From the sequence record NC_042018.1: a stretch of DNA of 64,000 nucleotides. One strand, written 5' to 3'. Every line of letters begins with the position of its first letter. Positions within the stretch are counted from its first letter, which is position 1. Of this stretch, positions 2,278 through 49,355 are shown piece after piece. The notes below the pieces were generated by a model. It was not told the origin of the DNA, searched no databases, and saw nothing but the letters and a program-made list of their open reading frames with translations. A program made the position numbers and the translations under genes.

Positions 2278-3174
2278 ATGAGCACTAACTATCCTCATCG
2301 TGACTCGGAAACCACGTTATCCAATTCCGATGCGTTTGTACAAGCGCTGGACCTGACCCGTCGTCCTGTGATTAACGCACAGAGCGGCGGGATGTACGGC
2401 TGGGCCGGTAACATTTTCGAATACGTTACCGCTCAACCGCACGTTCAGCAGCAGAGCTGGTGTATCATGCTTTCCACCCCGGCGTTCTTCAGTCGTCTGC
2501 CGGGCGGGACTGCACTGCACTCTCTGTGCAAATCGTTCTTTGAAAACCGTACCCAGAAATTCGAAGGTCTTTCTGACCGTACGGAGATCAACTTCGGTGA
2601 GATGAAGTGGACCGGTCACACTCTGTCCGTCCCAACGGGTGCTACCCGTACGCTGGGCCAGATTAGCCACACGGCTTATGATACTGAAGGTGAACCGTTC
2701 ACCAAGATGTTCAAAATCTGGTCTCAGTGGGGTCTGATGGATTCCGAGCTGATGAACGCCAAGCTGGTAACACTCCCGGATCCGGGTGACATGCTGCTGG
2801 ACGAAATCTCAGCGTCGGCGATTTACTTCGAACCGACCAAGAACATGAAAGACATCGCGCACGCACAGCTGGCCGTCGGCATCATGCCACGTACTACTGT
2901 TCCGATCGAAATGCGTCGTGATAAAGATGAAGAAGGTCAGCTCCGTATTATCAATATGGAATTCACCGGCCTCATCGAGTCTGACACTCTGGCGGTTAAG
3001 AACATCGCGCGTGAAATGCTGAAACTTCTGCCGCTGTACAACCCAGATGGTATCGCCGCACCTGCAGGCTTCAAAGATCGCACCAGCACTCTGAAGTCCC
3101 TGAACAAGTCCGGCAACATCGAGCGTATGGCTCAGCAGTCGAAAACGGTAACCAATAGCCAGTACATGGGCTAA
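2278..3174 (+). CDS. tail tube protein (phiKZ gp30-like)
   Basis: 298 aa ORF right after the sheath gene, AAGGA SD, optimised codons, followed by a hairpin terminator. Confidence 0.75.
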   Translation: MSTNYPHRDSETTLSNSDAFVQALDLTRRPVINAQSGGMYGWAGNIFEYVTAQPHVQQQSWCIMLSTPAFFSRLPGGTALHSLCKSFFENRTQKFEGLSDRTEINFGEMKWTGHTLSVPTGATRTLGQISHTAYDTEGEPFTKMFKIWSQWGLMDSELMNAKLVTLPDPGDMLLDEISASAIYFEPTKNMKDIAHAQLAVGIMPRTTVPIEMRRDKDEEGQLRIINMEFTGLIESDTLAVKNIAREMLKLLPLYNPDGIAAPAGFKDRTSTLKSLNKSGNIERMAQQSKTVTNSQYMG

Positions 3175-3267: not shown

Positions 3268-4113
3268 GTGAACTGCGTCGATTACGCTATTAACATGATT
3301 ACCGGTTCCGATATCGATGAGTACTTATTGAAGTTGGCGTTTGAGAATCCCAATGCGAACTTTAATGGCAATTGGTACGGAATGTTGAGTAACACCACCG
3401 TCGAACAAGGCATACGCGAAAAGGTCATTCACCGCACGGTGTTGCCGGCGTGTCAAGTGGGCGGGGGTAAAACCGAGTACGTTGATTTAACCGGAGCACG
3501 TATTCGTGACCTGGGCAACGGGTACGTTGAGGTTAACGTGCCGGACAGTTTAACCGGGGGACGTAAGATCATCACGGTGGAAGAGATTTATCTGGGGAGC
3601 ATGTCGTCTGCTGCCGGTATGCTGTCCATGGGGATAAACGAAAACACCATGTGTGGTCAAGGTAGCCTGAATGACATGATGCAGGGTCTGGTCGATAACT
3701 TGTCCAGTAACCGTACCATGCCACCTACCTACAGTAACGTCCACATGACGGGCAACAACAGCTTCGTGATTGTGGGGATGAACTCTGGAACGTTTTCAAT
3801 GACAGCGAAGTGCCTGCTGGAGTTTGATGACGGCATGACCAGTATTCACCCAAAAGCGTACGATACGTTTGCTGACCTCTGCCTGCTGGCAACCAAAGCT
3901 TATATCTACCGTACCTGTCGTCGTCCGACACAAGAAGCAGTGATTCGTGCTGGGGTAGCGCTGGAGAGTATCCGTGACGATATTGACGAATACCGGGATG
4001 CCTGGAAAGACTACCGTGAGTTCTTCGATACCACCTGGAAGAAAACCATGGCATACAGCGATCGTCAAGGCATGTATAACCGCATCGCCATGATGACTCC
4101 AACGCGTATGTAA
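3268..4113 (+). CDS. conserved jumbo-phage hypothetical protein, probably virion
   Basis: 281 aa ORF, GTG start after AAAGGAG SD, lies in the structural operon. Confidence 0.6.
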   Translation: MNCVDYAINMITGSDIDEYLLKLAFENPNANFNGNWYGMLSNTTVEQGIREKVIHRTVLPACQVGGGKTEYVDLTGARIRDLGNGYVEVNVPDSLTGGRKIITVEEIYLGSMSSAAGMLSMGINENTMCGQGSLNDMMQGLVDNLSSNRTMPPTYSNVHMTGNNSFVIVGMNSGTFSMTAKCLLEFDDGMTSIHPKAYDTFADLCLLATKAYIYRTCRRPTQEAVIRAGVALESIRDDIDEYRDAWKDYREFFDTTWKKTMAYSDRQGMYNRIAMMTPTRM

Positions 4114-27181: not shown

Positions 27182-27247
27182 GTCATAGCCCTGCATCTGC
27201 AGGGCTTAGCTTTTCATCATTATTTTTTTTTTCGTAAAGGAATTCTC

Positions 27248-27658
27248 ATGTCTACTTTTTGTGTGGCAACCATGTCCACAGAGAACGGATGGGAGACCCA
27301 GTCGGTCCCCACGGCTCTGTCGCTCCATTTAATGTATTGGTTCGCTTCCCGTCGTAATCAATCCAAAAACTTGGCTAATGTCCCCAGCTTCTATTATCTG
27401 TGGCAAAAGTACGGCACCAACAAAGAGCAACTGATTTCTAACTGTCGTCAAGAACTCATTCAGTATATGTCTGAATTGTTCGATTCCCCTAAGGTGGAAG
27501 TGACCGCAGTGGATACGTCAGAAGCCGGTAGTAGCTTCCGTTTGGTGTTCGCAGTACAAGTATTTTCTGACGGGACGAACTATGACTTAGCAAGGTCCGT
27601 GTTAATTACAAACGAAATGTATAAAGTTCTGGACGAGGAGAGATTAAATAATGCATGA
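27248..27658 (+). CDS. putative gp25-like baseplate wedge / sheath initiator
   Basis: 136 aa. Helix (CRQELIQYMSELF) followed by KVEVTAV..FRLVFAVQVF strands resembles the GPW/gp25 fold (inference). Confidence 0.4.
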   Translation: MSTFCVATMSTENGWETQSVPTALSLHLMYWFASRRNQSKNLANVPSFYYLWQKYGTNKEQLISNCRQELIQYMSELFDSPKVEVTAVDTSEAGSSFRLVFAVQVFSDGTNYDLARSVLITNEMYKVLDEERLNNA

Positions 27659-40475: not shown

Positions 40476-42008
40476 ATGCGCCATACGGCCGTTATTAGCA
40501 CGGCGAATAACTATATCCGTGTTCATGGTTATCACCAGGAGTTCGTCGAGCGTGTGATAATGCCGTTTTGTCGTATGAACCTGTATAAGACGGGGAGGGT
40601 CCCAATACCTGGGACCCGTGAAACCAAATACGTGACCACTCATGTGTTTGCCCGGTTTAACTTCGACAAAACAGAATTTCGCATTTGCCGCGAACTGTTT
40701 GATAGCTTTATCGATTATGCTGATACTCATGGCTACCACAAGAAACGTATCAAGGTTATCTCCGAAGCCGAACTGAGTGGCGTTAACGTCTCGTTTCAGT
40801 TTCAGGACGGTTGGGGGTCACCGCGACCGCATCAGGTGGATTGGTTAGAGTATCAGATGGGTGAAGGTGCGCTCAAGATAAACAACATGACGCCCGGGGG
40901 CGGTAAAACGTTTTGTGCGTTATACCAGATGGTGAAGATGGGTGTTCGCACCCTGATTACCATTCAGCCACGGTATATTCCGGTGTGGATTAAAGCACTG
41001 GGGGATATTGTACAGCTGGGTCCCCGTGACGTTATCTTGTGTGAGGGTGACCTCTCGCAAATCGTCGAGAACATTGAGAACGGTACGATTAACCCCAAAG
41101 TGGTTATTCTGCCGATGACCCGTATTGAACAGCATCTGAAGAAAGAGAAAGAAGACGAGTCCTATCCCGATTTGGACAACATCTTCCGGCGCATGGGTTG
41201 TGGGTTCCGTATCCAGGACGAAGCACACGAAGCCATCCACCAAATCTACCTTTCCATGATGTACGGTAACTTTCCTAAAACCCTGGTGCTCTCGGGTACA
41301 TTGCAAGCCGATGACCCGTTCACCAACAAGATTTACCGCTGGCTGTTCCCGAAGAAGCATTACCTGAAGGCAACAGAACATAAGCAATACCTGGACATCG
41401 TTGCTTACCAGTATCAGATTGACATGCGCAAGTATCGCATTAATACCATGTCATTTGGGTCGTACAGTGATGTGACCTTTGAGAAGTCGATTATCCGTAA
41501 TGGCAAGTTGATGAAGTTTTACTTTGAGCTCGTGAAGAAAGCGTTTGACGAGTTCTACCTTCCTCGAAGGCGTGAGGGTGGCAAGTGTCTGCTCTTCTTT
41601 TCGAAGGTGGATATGTGCGAACGCATTTGTTCAATGCTTAAGCACTGCTACCCTGACATGGATATCATCACGTACACCGGTGAGAACAGTAAGAAGGAAC
41701 GCAAAGACGAGTACCGTAAGCATGAGGTGGTAATCTCTACCCCTGGTAGCTGCGGAACCGGTAAGGACATACCGGGACTCATCAACGTGTTCTGTTGGCA
41801 CACTGTGTCCTCTATGCAACGTAACGACCAGATACTGATGCGCCTTCGCGATATCAGCAACCTCTGGACGGACATCGACCCGTTGTTCCTTTACGGCGTT
41901 TGTCTCGATATACCGAAGCATAAGGAGTATCACCGTAAACGTTATTCTCTGTTTGAACCAAAAGCCAAGCGTCAACGGCTGATTAATTCCGACATGATTC
42001 TAATGTAA
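40476..42008 (+). CDS. SF2 DEAH-box helicase (phiKZ gp75-like)
   Basis: TPGGGKT (I), DEAH (II), SGT (III), GTGKDIPGL (V), QILMRLR (VI). Confidence 0.88.
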   Translation: MRHTAVISTANNYIRVHGYHQEFVERVIMPFCRMNLYKTGRVPIPGTRETKYVTTHVFARFNFDKTEFRICRELFDSFIDYADTHGYHKKRIKVISEAELSGVNVSFQFQDGWGSPRPHQVDWLEYQMGEGALKINNMTPGGGKTFCALYQMVKMGVRTLITIQPRYIPVWIKALGDIVQLGPRDVILCEGDLSQIVENIENGTINPKVVILPMTRIEQHLKKEKEDESYPDLDNIFRRMGCGFRIQDEAHEAIHQIYLSMMYGNFPKTLVLSGTLQADDPFTNKIYRWLFPKKHYLKATEHKQYLDIVAYQYQIDMRKYRINTMSFGSYSDVTFEKSIIRNGKLMKFYFELVKKAFDEFYLPRRREGGKCLLFFSKVDMCERICSMLKHCYPDMDIITYTGENSKKERKDEYRKHEVVISTPGSCGTGKDIPGLINVFCWHTVSSMQRNDQILMRLRDISNLWTDIDPLFLYGVCLDIPKHKEYHRKRYSLFEPKAKRQRLINSDMILM

Positions 42009-46998: not shown

Positions 46999-48819
46999 TT
47001 GACCATGGAACAACAACCTGGATTCGATCCTGATCTGAACAAAGATCTCCTGACTGAAGAAGTTGCTCATGCCCCGCGTCCCAATATCGGGCAAGCAGCT
47101 TCTGTACAACCAACTCAGTCTCAGCCGGTTATCCCGCAACCTCAGCCTGTGGTTCAAGAAGCCGCTGCCGCTGTTCCGGTTAAAGAGCCCGTTGCGCCAG
47201 CGCGTGCTGACCAAATTCACACGGCTGAAAACACGCCGTTCAAAAACTTCATCCCGCTGTCCAGCATCTTTATTAAGAAGCTGACCGAGAAAGAGAAGGA
47301 GCAGGGTTATCTGACCGTGTTCCTGGGTAACCACAAAGACGTTATCGAAGCGAAGAACGAGCTGATTCAGAAATGGCTGGTCTTCCGTGCGTCTATCGGT
47401 ATGCTGGCTGACGGTGAAATCACCGAGCAGGAAGCGGAAAGCGCCCGTGCTAACTGGACAGAATATCTGCAGGCGAACCACCCAGGCGAAGACCAGGAAG
47501 AGATGGAGAAGTATTGTCTTGAGCTGTATCAGTTTATGGACACCATCCAGGACGGGATTAAAATCCGCAGTCGTCTGATGCAGGAAGACCGCGTTACTAA
47601 CCTCAGTGACCGTGGCAGTAACTTCATCACTGGCGACATCACCGGTAAACAGCCGAAGGCCGTACTGAAGAACACCGCGCTGTCTGAACAGATGCGTCGT
47701 TCTGCGCTGAACGCCAATCAGGACCTGTATGAGTTTGATATCCTGCTGCGTAACTCGTTTGCCGGTCTGTCTATCCGTCGTCCTAACCTGCTTTCCCTGG
47801 GCAGCCTGGTGCAAGCCATCAGCAATCAGGTAAAAGGCTACGTGCGTCAAATCAACAACCCGTCGGTTACCCTGGCCTACATTGCCGGTATTCGTTGTAT
47901 GTGGGACTACGTGTCTAAACTGATCCTTACCTGTTCAGTAAAAGACACCCGTGACTTCCGCGAGCTGGCTGACTCTATCCTGTTAACGGATGTGGACCAG
48001 CTGGCTGTGGGTCTGTTGAACTCCATCTACACCCGTGGCGTGCATCTCGAACTGCGCTGCATGAACCCGGGCTGTAACTGGTCTGATTTTGGCCTGGCTG
48101 ATCCGTCAAAGCTGTTGGACATTCGTAAGAAGTTCGAAACGCCGGAAGAAGCTGCGGTATTCGCCAACATCATCAACCGTCGCCAGAAGTATTCTCGCGA
48201 AGACATGGAGAAGCTGCAGAAGGCAACCAACTACGGTATTGAAGACACTCGTGTGTTCGGTACTGATGGTCGCCATTACTTCCGTATCTCTCCGCCGACG
48301 TTGACTCAGGCATTCGAAACCCTGGAGTTCTTCACGGAAACCATCAACCCGCGTATTCAGGAACTGCGTGCCAACACGTTGGACCCGAAAGAGTTCGAAA
48401 ACGAACTCACTGCGCTGTTGACCTCTATCTCCTCTGCGGAATACCTGCACTGGATTTCAGAGTACGTGGTACTGCCGGAGCCGGGTAGTGATGCTGAACC
48501 AACTGTGTACGCACGTCCTAAGCACGACACGGCTGAGTTTAACCGTGGCCTGATGGCTATCCTGGAGGATGACCCTGAGCTGGGTAATGCCCTGGTGAAA
48601 TTTGTGTACAACAAATCACCGTTCCTGTCTCGCGTCTTCACTGGGGTTGACCACCACGAGTGCCCGGCCTGTAAAGCACGTTCTGATGAACACGACGGTC
48701 GTCAGTTAGGCTTCACTCCGATCAACGCCTTCATGAGTTTTTTTACCCTTACCCAGTTGAAGCTCATGGTGAGAACGGTCCAGGCCGACATAACAAACCG
48801 CGAAGCCCTCTCGGATTAA
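46999..48819 (+). CDS. CxxC-containing protein, putative tail-assembly chaperone / baseplate-hub assembly factor (0-frame product)
   Basis: 606 aa, CMNPGC and CPAC pairs, slippery T-TTT-TTT near the 3' end. Confidence 0.5.
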   Translation: MTMEQQPGFDPDLNKDLLTEEVAHAPRPNIGQAASVQPTQSQPVIPQPQPVVQEAAAAVPVKEPVAPARADQIHTAENTPFKNFIPLSSIFIKKLTEKEKEQGYLTVFLGNHKDVIEAKNELIQKWLVFRASIGMLADGEITEQEAESARANWTEYLQANHPGEDQEEMEKYCLELYQFMDTIQDGIKIRSRLMQEDRVTNLSDRGSNFITGDITGKQPKAVLKNTALSEQMRRSALNANQDLYEFDILLRNSFAGLSIRRPNLLSLGSLVQAISNQVKGYVRQINNPSVTLAYIAGIRCMWDYVSKLILTCSVKDTRDFRELADSILLTDVDQLAVGLLNSIYTRGVHLELRCMNPGCNWSDFGLADPSKLLDIRKKFETPEEAAVFANIINRRQKYSREDMEKLQKATNYGIEDTRVFGTDGRHYFRISPPTLTQAFETLEFFTETINPRIQELRANTLDPKEFENELTALLTSISSAEYLHWISEYVVLPEPGSDAEPTVYARPKHDTAEFNRGLMAILEDDPELGNALVKFVYNKSPFLSRVFTGVDHHECPACKARSDEHDGRQLGFTPINAFMSFFTLTQLKLMVRTVQADITNREALSD

Positions 48820-49268
48820 TCACCGAGCCTTACTTCTCGGCTGAGTACCTTCGGGTCTCTGGTAACCTGCTTGGGAAAGATATCTCGAACATCTCTCCTG
48901 AGCAGCTCCAACGTTATGAAGAGATGCTGTACGACTTCAACATGGGGTATTACCGAACGGAGACCATGACTCCGTTTTCGTCGGTGGCGTACATCAAAGA
49001 GGAAAACGAATTCTATCATCCTTTATCGTTTGAGGAGACTGGCAAGCGCTATGGGTTTAACAAACTGCACGACGTTATTCCCATGGAGACGTACCTGAAG
49101 CTTCCAGCCTTTATGATAGACGATTTCCTTAACGGCATCACGAAAGGCAAAGAGCAGCGGTTCAAGTTAGATAAGGACAAAGCACCGGCTGACGGTGACG
49201 CACCTAATGCTGAAATGCGGAACGTTGCTCTCCAACTCGAAAGTATCCTGAAGACTATGAACAAGTAA
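48738..49268 (+). CDS. -1 frame extension of 46999..48819 (track ORF 48924..49268), GT-like partner
   Basis: The -1 frame is open from the T7 run at 48738-48744 to TAA 49268, with no ATG until 48924. Confidence 0.55.
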   Translation, partial: FFYPYPVEAHGENGPGRHNKPRSPLGLITEPYFSAEYLRVSGNLLGKDISNISPEQLQRYEEMLYDFNMGYYRTETMTPFSSVAYIKEENEFYHPLSFEETGKRYGFNKLHDVIPMETYLKLPAFMIDDFLNGITKGKEQRFKLDKDKAPADGDAPNAEMRNVALQLESILKTMNK

Positions 49269-49355
49269 TCTTCCCGTATCTCCTCCTCTGGCTGCGGCTG
49301 GGGGAGGGATATTTTATGCATGCCTCCTTATTCTTTATTTATGAAAGGTGAAATT

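Follow-up and report, generated by a model that had tools for sequence, protein, structure and literature searches.

Comparative evidence for a probable programmed −1 frameshift in a core gene of Chimalliviridae phages

The tail chaperone pairs gpG/gpGT of phage lambda and gpE/gpE+E′ of phage P2 consist of isoforms that share an N-terminal body, the long form adding a C-terminal domain, and no strong stimulatory structure is apparent in them. The tau and gamma products of Escherichia coli dnaX are two isoforms of a non-virion factor, made from one gene in a set ratio at a heptamer of identical-base triplets. Stimulatory elements (a hairpin or pseudoknot 5–9 nucleotides (nt) downstream, or an upstream Shine–Dalgarno (SD)-like motif) are common in −1 frameshift cassettes but not obligatory. 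Here we describe a locus of comparable layout in a 64,000-nt stretch of sequence record NC_042018.1 (the window), which corresponds to Erwinia phage vB_EamM_RisingSun (NC_042018 / MF459646) at 100% identity and with the same coordinates. Two of its annotated genes, gp53 and gp54 (open reading frames ORF1 and ORF2), are probably one gene decoded two ways by programmed −1 ribosomal frameshifting on a run of seven T residues, yielding isoforms of 604 and about 754 amino acids (aa).

The predicted products of ORF1 and its extension would resemble the lambda and P2 pairs in sharing an N-terminal body to which the long form adds a domain, and the apparent lack of a strong stimulatory structure is a further likeness. 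The resemblance to dnaX would lie in one gene that yields a non-virion factor as two isoforms at a set ratio, and in a heptamer of identical-base triplets; the shifted dnaX product is shorter, whereas that of the RisingSun locus would be longer. The dnaX site has two stimulators, an SD-like element upstream and a hairpin downstream (review PMC5009743); neither was found at the RisingSun locus, whose elements are as follows.

47005..48819, + strand: ORF1, RisingSun gp53, with its annotated ATG start at 47005 and a frame-0 product of 604 aa
48738..48744, + strand: slippery heptamer T_TTT_TTT in the X_XXY_YYZ register of ORF1, spanning two invariant Phe codons and the preceding wobble base
48738..49268, + strand: predicted −1-frame coding extension, 176 codons including the two Phe codons, then a stop
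48738 to 48819, + strand: first segment of the extension, overlapping the ORF1 tail
48820–48923, + strand: second segment, the 'bridge', 104 nt annotated as intergenic
48924–49268, + strand: third segment, the annotated gp54
48924..49268, + strand: ORF2, RisingSun gp54, annotated 'hypothetical protein'
47005..49268, + strand: whole putative recoded gene, a predicted single transcription and translation unit with a short (frame 0) and a long (frame 0 then −1) isoform

The first of the seven T residues is the third base of an ORF1 codon. Beyond the heptamer, frame 0 continues for 24 sense codons to a TAA at 48817–48819. The −1 frame, closed by a TGA at 48687–48689, is open from there up to the stop at 49266–49268, and it contains no ATG, GTG or TTG from 48690 to the annotated ATG at 48924, the 61st codon past the two Phe codons. 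By codon count (580 + 174), the long product is predicted to comprise about 754 aa. Use of an alternative ORF1 start, a TTG at 46999, would give a short product of 606 aa rather than the 604 aa obtained from the annotated ATG. The heptamer, its register, the downstream stop and the open −1 frame had been described in an earlier reading of the window (the sequence-only reading), and we confirmed them from the sequence and the ORF list. Runs of seven T are depleted in the window (8, against 19 ± 6 in shuffles), and only this one lies inside a long ORF, the others falling between genes, at the end of the genome or in an ORF that is small or doubtful. In a single genome the run is not significant; it amounts to more than chance because the heptamer is conserved in relatives.

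We propose that most ribosomes would read ORF1 to its stop, producing the 604-aa protein with its last ~25 residues as a C-terminal helix. A fraction would slip back one base on U_UUU_UUU, where both tRNA-Phe could re-pair with UUU in the −1 frame, and would read 174 further codons to give the ~754-aa isoform. In this long isoform the terminal helix would be swapped for a Pro/Gly-rich linker and a helical domain of ~145 residues, together corresponding to gp54 plus 60 unannotated residues. The arrangement may have been kept so that one message yields both isoforms. Low shift efficiency is to be expected, as in the tail chaperone pairs, because no stimulator was found.

A heptamer and an open −1 frame conserved across Chimalliviridae, which the sequence-only reading had named as the check on its prediction, are what the relatives display. 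Searches by tblastn with the −1-frame translation matched 43 phage records, in which the matches start within the ORF1 overlap and span two annotated genes. An in-register T_TTT_TTY (the canonical site) stands at the homologous position in 61 of 64 loci (45 T_TTT_TTT and 16 T_TTT_TTC) and in 32 of the 34 clusters formed at 60% ORF1 identity. All 64 loci require a −1 shift to reach the extension, which runs for 149–183 codons as against a frame-0 tail of 8–44 codons. The core claim of the sequence-only reading, a programmed −1 shift on the T heptamer that fuses ORF1 to the ORF2 frame, is thus strongly supported by comparative evidence.

The canonical site is present in phiKZ (gp77 into gp76.4), 201phi2-1 (gp136 into gp135), RAY (gp267 into gp266), Goslar (gp081 into gp082), one Seoulvirus and four metagenomic close relatives. 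Joad, Shewanella phage FishSpeaker, Pseudomonas phage EL (gp47) and Klebsiella phage Miami combine the heptamer with the −1 relation and a long −1 ORF, and the heptamer and −1 layout extend to OBP, pEt-SU, Aeromonas PS1 and D3, Vibrio pTD1 and Salmonella SPLA10. Among 28 GenBank phages retrieved with queries that end before the site, 26 are canonical, as are 36 of 37 IMG/VR loci, retrieved with a peptide pattern that contains the two Phe residues, and 10 of 11 loci from further diverse genera. The exceptions are PhiPA3, with the non-T first base of G_TTT_TTT (locus positions 2838–2844), an IMG/VR locus with C_TTT_TTT (locus positions 3126–3132), and Vibrio phage pVa-21 with A_CTT_TTT. All three retain a T5–T6 run, and the first two preserve T6 together with the −1 extension. 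In our reading the two-frame arrangement is ancestral to Chimalliviridae.

In pVa-21 (locus 2730–2760), a second in-register heptamer, A_AAT_TTG, lies 24 nt downstream of the degenerate T5 site, and the −1 frame is still open; this heptamer may be a relocated slip site.

The same survey bears on whether the layout is an artefact, arising from a homopolymer miscall or from recent breakage of the gene. Some sequencing chemistries make errors in homopolymers, and the singular position of this T7 run within a long ORF of the window could be read in that light. Against such an origin, the two-frame layout recurs in 64 independent loci from isolates and metagenomes spanning ~20 years, phiKZ and EL included, and the T run varies from 5 to 8 among genomes from different sequencing technologies while the −1 relation stays constant. 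No single-ORF fusion was found in a library of 1.84 billion proteins, in which the 52 representative clusters of the extension domain all measure 100–168 aa, and no fused form occurs among 13 database ORF1 homologs (539–621 aa). With both frames under selection in addition, as set out below, we regard an artefact or decay as vanishingly improbable. The sequence-only reading had allowed that the true run might hold eight T and close up into a single ORF, an outcome excluded by the distribution over the 64 loci, none of which has the single-ORF form. The absence of any fused form suggests that the two-frame layout is maintained rather than tolerated.

Codon choice at the site was compared with that in the rest of ORF1. 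The residue before the site varies (S, N, A, G, V, T, L, I, Y or H). T occupies the X position in 32 of 34 clusters, against 28% of third positions elsewhere in ORF1 (P ~1.6e-16), and TTT encodes the first Phe in 33 of 34, against 29% TTT among other ORF1 Phe codons (P ~1.5e-19); both P values are Poisson-binomial tails with clusters taken as independent, and they are optimistic because relatives are not independent. Several genomes use 0–1 TTT against 21–26 TTC among their Phe codons elsewhere in ORF1. Bases 1–6 of the heptamer are fixed and base 7 alternates between T and C, a freedom that the tandem-slippage model allows. Upstream of the site, frame-0 position 3 is the least conserved phase (0.53 bits, compared with 1.14 and 1.31), and the X base, itself a frame-0 wobble position, carries 1.82 bits.

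Downstream, the invariant nucleotides are CC doublets at +9/+10 and +15/+16, which form Pro codons in the −1 frame and are senseless as a frame-0 constraint. Correspondingly, the −1 translations align from their first residues, with F, F, P and P invariant. Mean pairwise amino-acid identity before the site is 0.50 in frame 0 and 0.25 in −1; after the site the values are 0.28 and 0.34. It follows that the overlap codes in both frames and that constraint on the −1 frame is no weaker than on frame 0. In the 104-nt RisingSun bridge, the ratio of non-synonymous to synonymous differences (pN/pS) is 0.37 in the ORF2 frame, compared with 1.03 and 2.02 in the other frames, and the differences fall 133/73/212 by codon position. 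Judged by these substitution patterns, −1-frame selection is shown to begin exactly at the heptamer, and the bridge to evolve as coding sequence. The phiKZ locus is similarly arranged: the 218-nt 'intergenic' gap between gp77 and gp76.4 (locus 3707–3924) is open in the gp76.4 frame back to the heptamer, and the first ATG in that frame lies 86 codons past the site.

At ~48800–48819, just before the ORF1 stop, a nucleotide block read in both frames is nearly invariant across the EL/RisingSun clade. Dual coding probably explains this block, with a role at the RNA level as a less likely alternative.

The evidence on start codons bears on a second alternative, in which no recoding occurs, ORF2 is a separate small gene translated by its own initiation or by termination–reinitiation at the ORF1 stop, and the heptamer is incidental. 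Every GenBank record examined annotates two genes at the locus, RisingSun has the ATG at 48924, and four close relatives have a start codon in the ORF2 frame that overlaps the ORF1 stop (RisingSun 48817–48821), ATG in three and GTG in one. At that overlap, however, RisingSun and Joad have ATC, which is no start codon, and yet the start-free bridge is under purifying selection. Across 53 loci, the −1 frame of 50 lacks any ATG, GTG or TTG from its preceding stop to the site, and thus any start codon that reaches the segment, bearing out the earlier claim that the ORF2 frame lacks an independent start. The first ATG past the site lies anywhere from 23 to 140 codons downstream (median 55), and because the extension has no conserved start, the called 'ORF2' starts are scattered along its profile. 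Separate initiation would also leave the wobble-base and codon-choice constraint on the heptamer unexplained, as well as −1-frame conservation that starts at the heptamer, upstream of usable starts, with its invariant Pro codons. We consider a separate gene improbable.

Several observations weigh against a programmed ribosomal frameshift. Support for the long product is comparative throughout, and within that support stand the optimism of the P values and the retrieval of the IMG/VR loci through the two Phe residues. RNAalifold returned no conserved RNA pairs downstream of the site (21 loci, 0 pairs); the downstream fold in RisingSun is unremarkable (z −0.66); over 44 loci the folds have a mean z of −0.32, with none below −2; no upstream SD-like motif was detected in 44 loci; and the locus has no Rfam match. 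In E. coli, A_AAA_AAG is reported to shift far more readily than U_UUU_UUU alone (review PMC5009743). At the three loci in which X is not T, P-site re-pairing would be imperfect. Given the ATG or GTG at the ORF1 stop in four relatives, a shorter ORF2 product made by its own or a coupled restart may exist in some lineages. The feature common to every locus is the T run, which is equally suited to polymerase slippage.

Under transcriptional slippage, the phage multisubunit RNA polymerase would stutter on the T run and generate mRNAs of altered run length, giving the same two isoforms. Such a mechanism is consistent with the run of 5–8 T in every locus, including the T5–T6 held by the three loci without the canonical X base, and with the failure to find a ribosomal stimulator. 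It also agrees with the depletion of T7 runs in the window, expected if such runs are error-prone in this system, and with annotations according to which these phages transcribe with their own RNA polymerases. The runs are nevertheless short compared with known bacterial slippage sites, which typically have 8–9 or more (review PMC5009743), and run length is not maximised, 16 of the 64 loci having only T6 followed by C. The fixed bases 1–6, the T/C alternation at base 7 and the fixed codon register match tandem tRNA slippage. We infer that the shift is ribosomal rather than transcriptional and consider polymerase slippage quite unlikely. One may speculate that a phage factor or a conserved nascent peptide aids the ribosomal shift.

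The short isoform belongs to a conserved family. ORF1 is Chimalliviridae core gene cg18 (phiKZ gp077, Goslar gp081, RAY gp267), listed as a hypothetical protein (Table S3, PMC10299810), and orthology together with synteny identifies phiKZ gp77, EL gp47, 201phi2-1 gp136, RAY gp267 and Goslar gp081 as its counterparts. It matches phrog_4585 (E 5e-166); its only PHROG matches are unannotated families, and it has no Pfam or NCBIfam match. Scans of 23 family members against Pfam (E up to 10) and PHROGs (E up to 1) likewise returned only unannotated ortholog families. In GenBank, gp53 is annotated as 'putative ZipA-like cell division protein', a label that has been copied to Aeromonas phage records; we reject it, as it has no Pfam, NCBIfam or fold match. 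A search of the literature on phiKZ gp77 function yielded nothing relevant, as mentions of 'gp77' follow the numbering of other phages.

The AlphaFold2 model of ORF1 has a predicted local distance difference test score (pLDDT) of 81 and a predicted template modelling score (pTM) of 0.79, with residues 1–60 disordered. Its terminal helix (575–603) contains the two Phe residues of the slip site (579–580). Cysteines at 352, 357, 553 and 556 are invariant, which suggests a zinc site. Neither a profile search against PDB sequences (best E 0.74) nor a Foldseek search of the model against the PDB (best E 1.9) found a counterpart. Against BFVD, Foldseek returned, beyond orthologs, weak matches of part of ORF1 to three proteins of ~250–285 aa named 'Baseplate hub assembly protein, bacteriophage T4-like' or 'Baseplate hub assembly chaperone' (E 4.7e-3, 1.1e-2 and 0.1; probability 1.00, 1.00 and 0.66; target-normalized template modelling score 0.43, 0.49 and 0.35). 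Orthologs appear in some deposited records as 'baseplate hub', 'baseplate hub assembly protein' or 'baseplate protein'.

These T4 gp51-type proteins are the only candidate fold-level relatives outside the orthologous group. They differ from ORF1 in that no Pfam or PHROG profile match links the two, no solved structure serves as counterpart, and the genomic context of ORF1 is another. We know of no frameshift in T4 gene 51. The comparison with T4 gp26 and gp51 proposed in the sequence-only reading thus gave a weak structural lead to T4-like 'baseplate hub assembly' proteins and no profile match. Because of that weak Foldseek match, an assembly-chaperone-like role is a reasonable analogy.

The identity that the sequence-only reading had favoured, a chaperone of the lambda G/GT or P2 E/E′ type, is not supported by profiles, length or gene position. 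Unlike the lambda and P2 chaperones of 100–150 aa, ORF1 is ~600 aa, four times too long, and neither it nor its extension has a sequence or profile relationship to them. No Pfam, NCBIfam or annotated PHROG match points to lambda G/GT-type membership, and Foldseek matches named as tail assembly chaperones all have E above 2. ORF1 lies between a virion RNA polymerase subunit block and a DNA polymerase gene, not between tube and tape-measure genes. Around it lie hypothetical genes, a homolog of a head structural protein and genes for a virion RNA polymerase subunit and DNA polymerase; within a conserved block, ORF1 stands near the counterparts of phiKZ gp78, of the head protein gp79 and of gp80, which is virion RNA polymerase beta′.

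Records on virion proteins were also compared. In 201phi2-1, a mass-spectrometry note accompanies gp138 and gp139 and none accompanies gp136 or gp135; in phiKZ, neighbouring genes are flagged as detected by mass spectrometry or as structural and gp77 is not, which is a missing annotation note only. A preprint on the Goslar virion structure does not mention gp81/gp081, gp80 or gp82, again a missing mention only. By analogy, our best guess is an assembly factor absent from the virion and possibly serving the baseplate hub; its long form would bridge to a second partner as in G/GT pairs.

The domain of the extension is homologous between the RisingSun/EL/OBP group and the phiKZ/RAY/Seoulvirus-like group (hhalign probability 97.1%, E 5e-11, 97 columns), which marks the extension as ancestral. 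The model of the extension (pLDDT 81.7) consists of a low-confidence segment (residues 1–30) followed by a helical domain (31–176). A profile search against PDB sequences gave nothing (best E 0.08), Foldseek against BFVD returned one ortholog only, and there was no match to Pfam, NCBIfam or annotated PHROG families.

A bolder and unlikely reading is that the locus represents regulated, stimulator-less recoding specific to nucleus-forming infection. Its efficiency would be set by a ribosome-associated phage protein, the conserved nascent peptide upstream of the site or slippage of the phage RNA polymerase, and the long isoform would be the missing baseplate-hub or tape-measure assembly chaperone of Chimalliviridae, a G/GT-like solution evolved independently on a gp51-like scaffold.

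The sequence comparisons point to a −1 recoding signal in a new gene, one that is present family-wide and does not belong to the classical tail-chaperone families. We found no published description of a frameshift in phiKZ-like phages, in keeping with the earlier statement that such recoding is unannotated there. Chimalliviridae serve as much-studied models of jumbo phages and as candidates for therapy, with phiKZ, PhiPA3, 201phi2-1, Goslar and RAY among them; cg18/gp77, which has no assigned function, belongs to the roughly 70 core genes of the family. If programmed −1 frameshifting is correct, all records examined misdescribe the locus, a protein of ~750 aa is missing from the proteome, and 60–140 codons listed as intergenic are coding, the phiKZ gap of 218 nt among them. 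Likewise, phiKZ gp76.4, 201phi2-1 gp135, RAY gp266 and Goslar gp082 would not be independent genes, and recoding would have persisted throughout a phage family despite divergence of its ORF1 proteins to ~20% identity. Such an arrangement would point to a two-isoform logic for an assembly or structural step, and it yields a checkable prediction for existing proteomic and ribosome-profiling data.

A RisingSun-like jumbo phage with 81% ORF1 identity is present in the Salmonella enterica serovar Minnesota dataset SRR3049147, the longest carrying contig being 232.7 kb; NCBI lists its ORF1 protein as a Salmonella hypothetical protein. Directly after the ORF2 stop and before gp55, a consensus scan identified one further element.

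49281..49308, + strand: terminator-like 12-bp GC-rich hairpin followed by a T-rich tract

From its sequence, this hairpin is a plausible terminator closing a gp52–gp54 unit. Elsewhere in the window, the records disagree on gp45 (40476–42008): the Joad GenBank entry names it 'putative terminase', the RisingSun RefSeq entry 'DNA helicase'. The longest homopolymer of the window is a T10 run at 27223–27233, intergenic and just upstream of an ORF at 27248–27658; it may serve as a promoter or UP-like tract, or act as a spacer prone to slippage.

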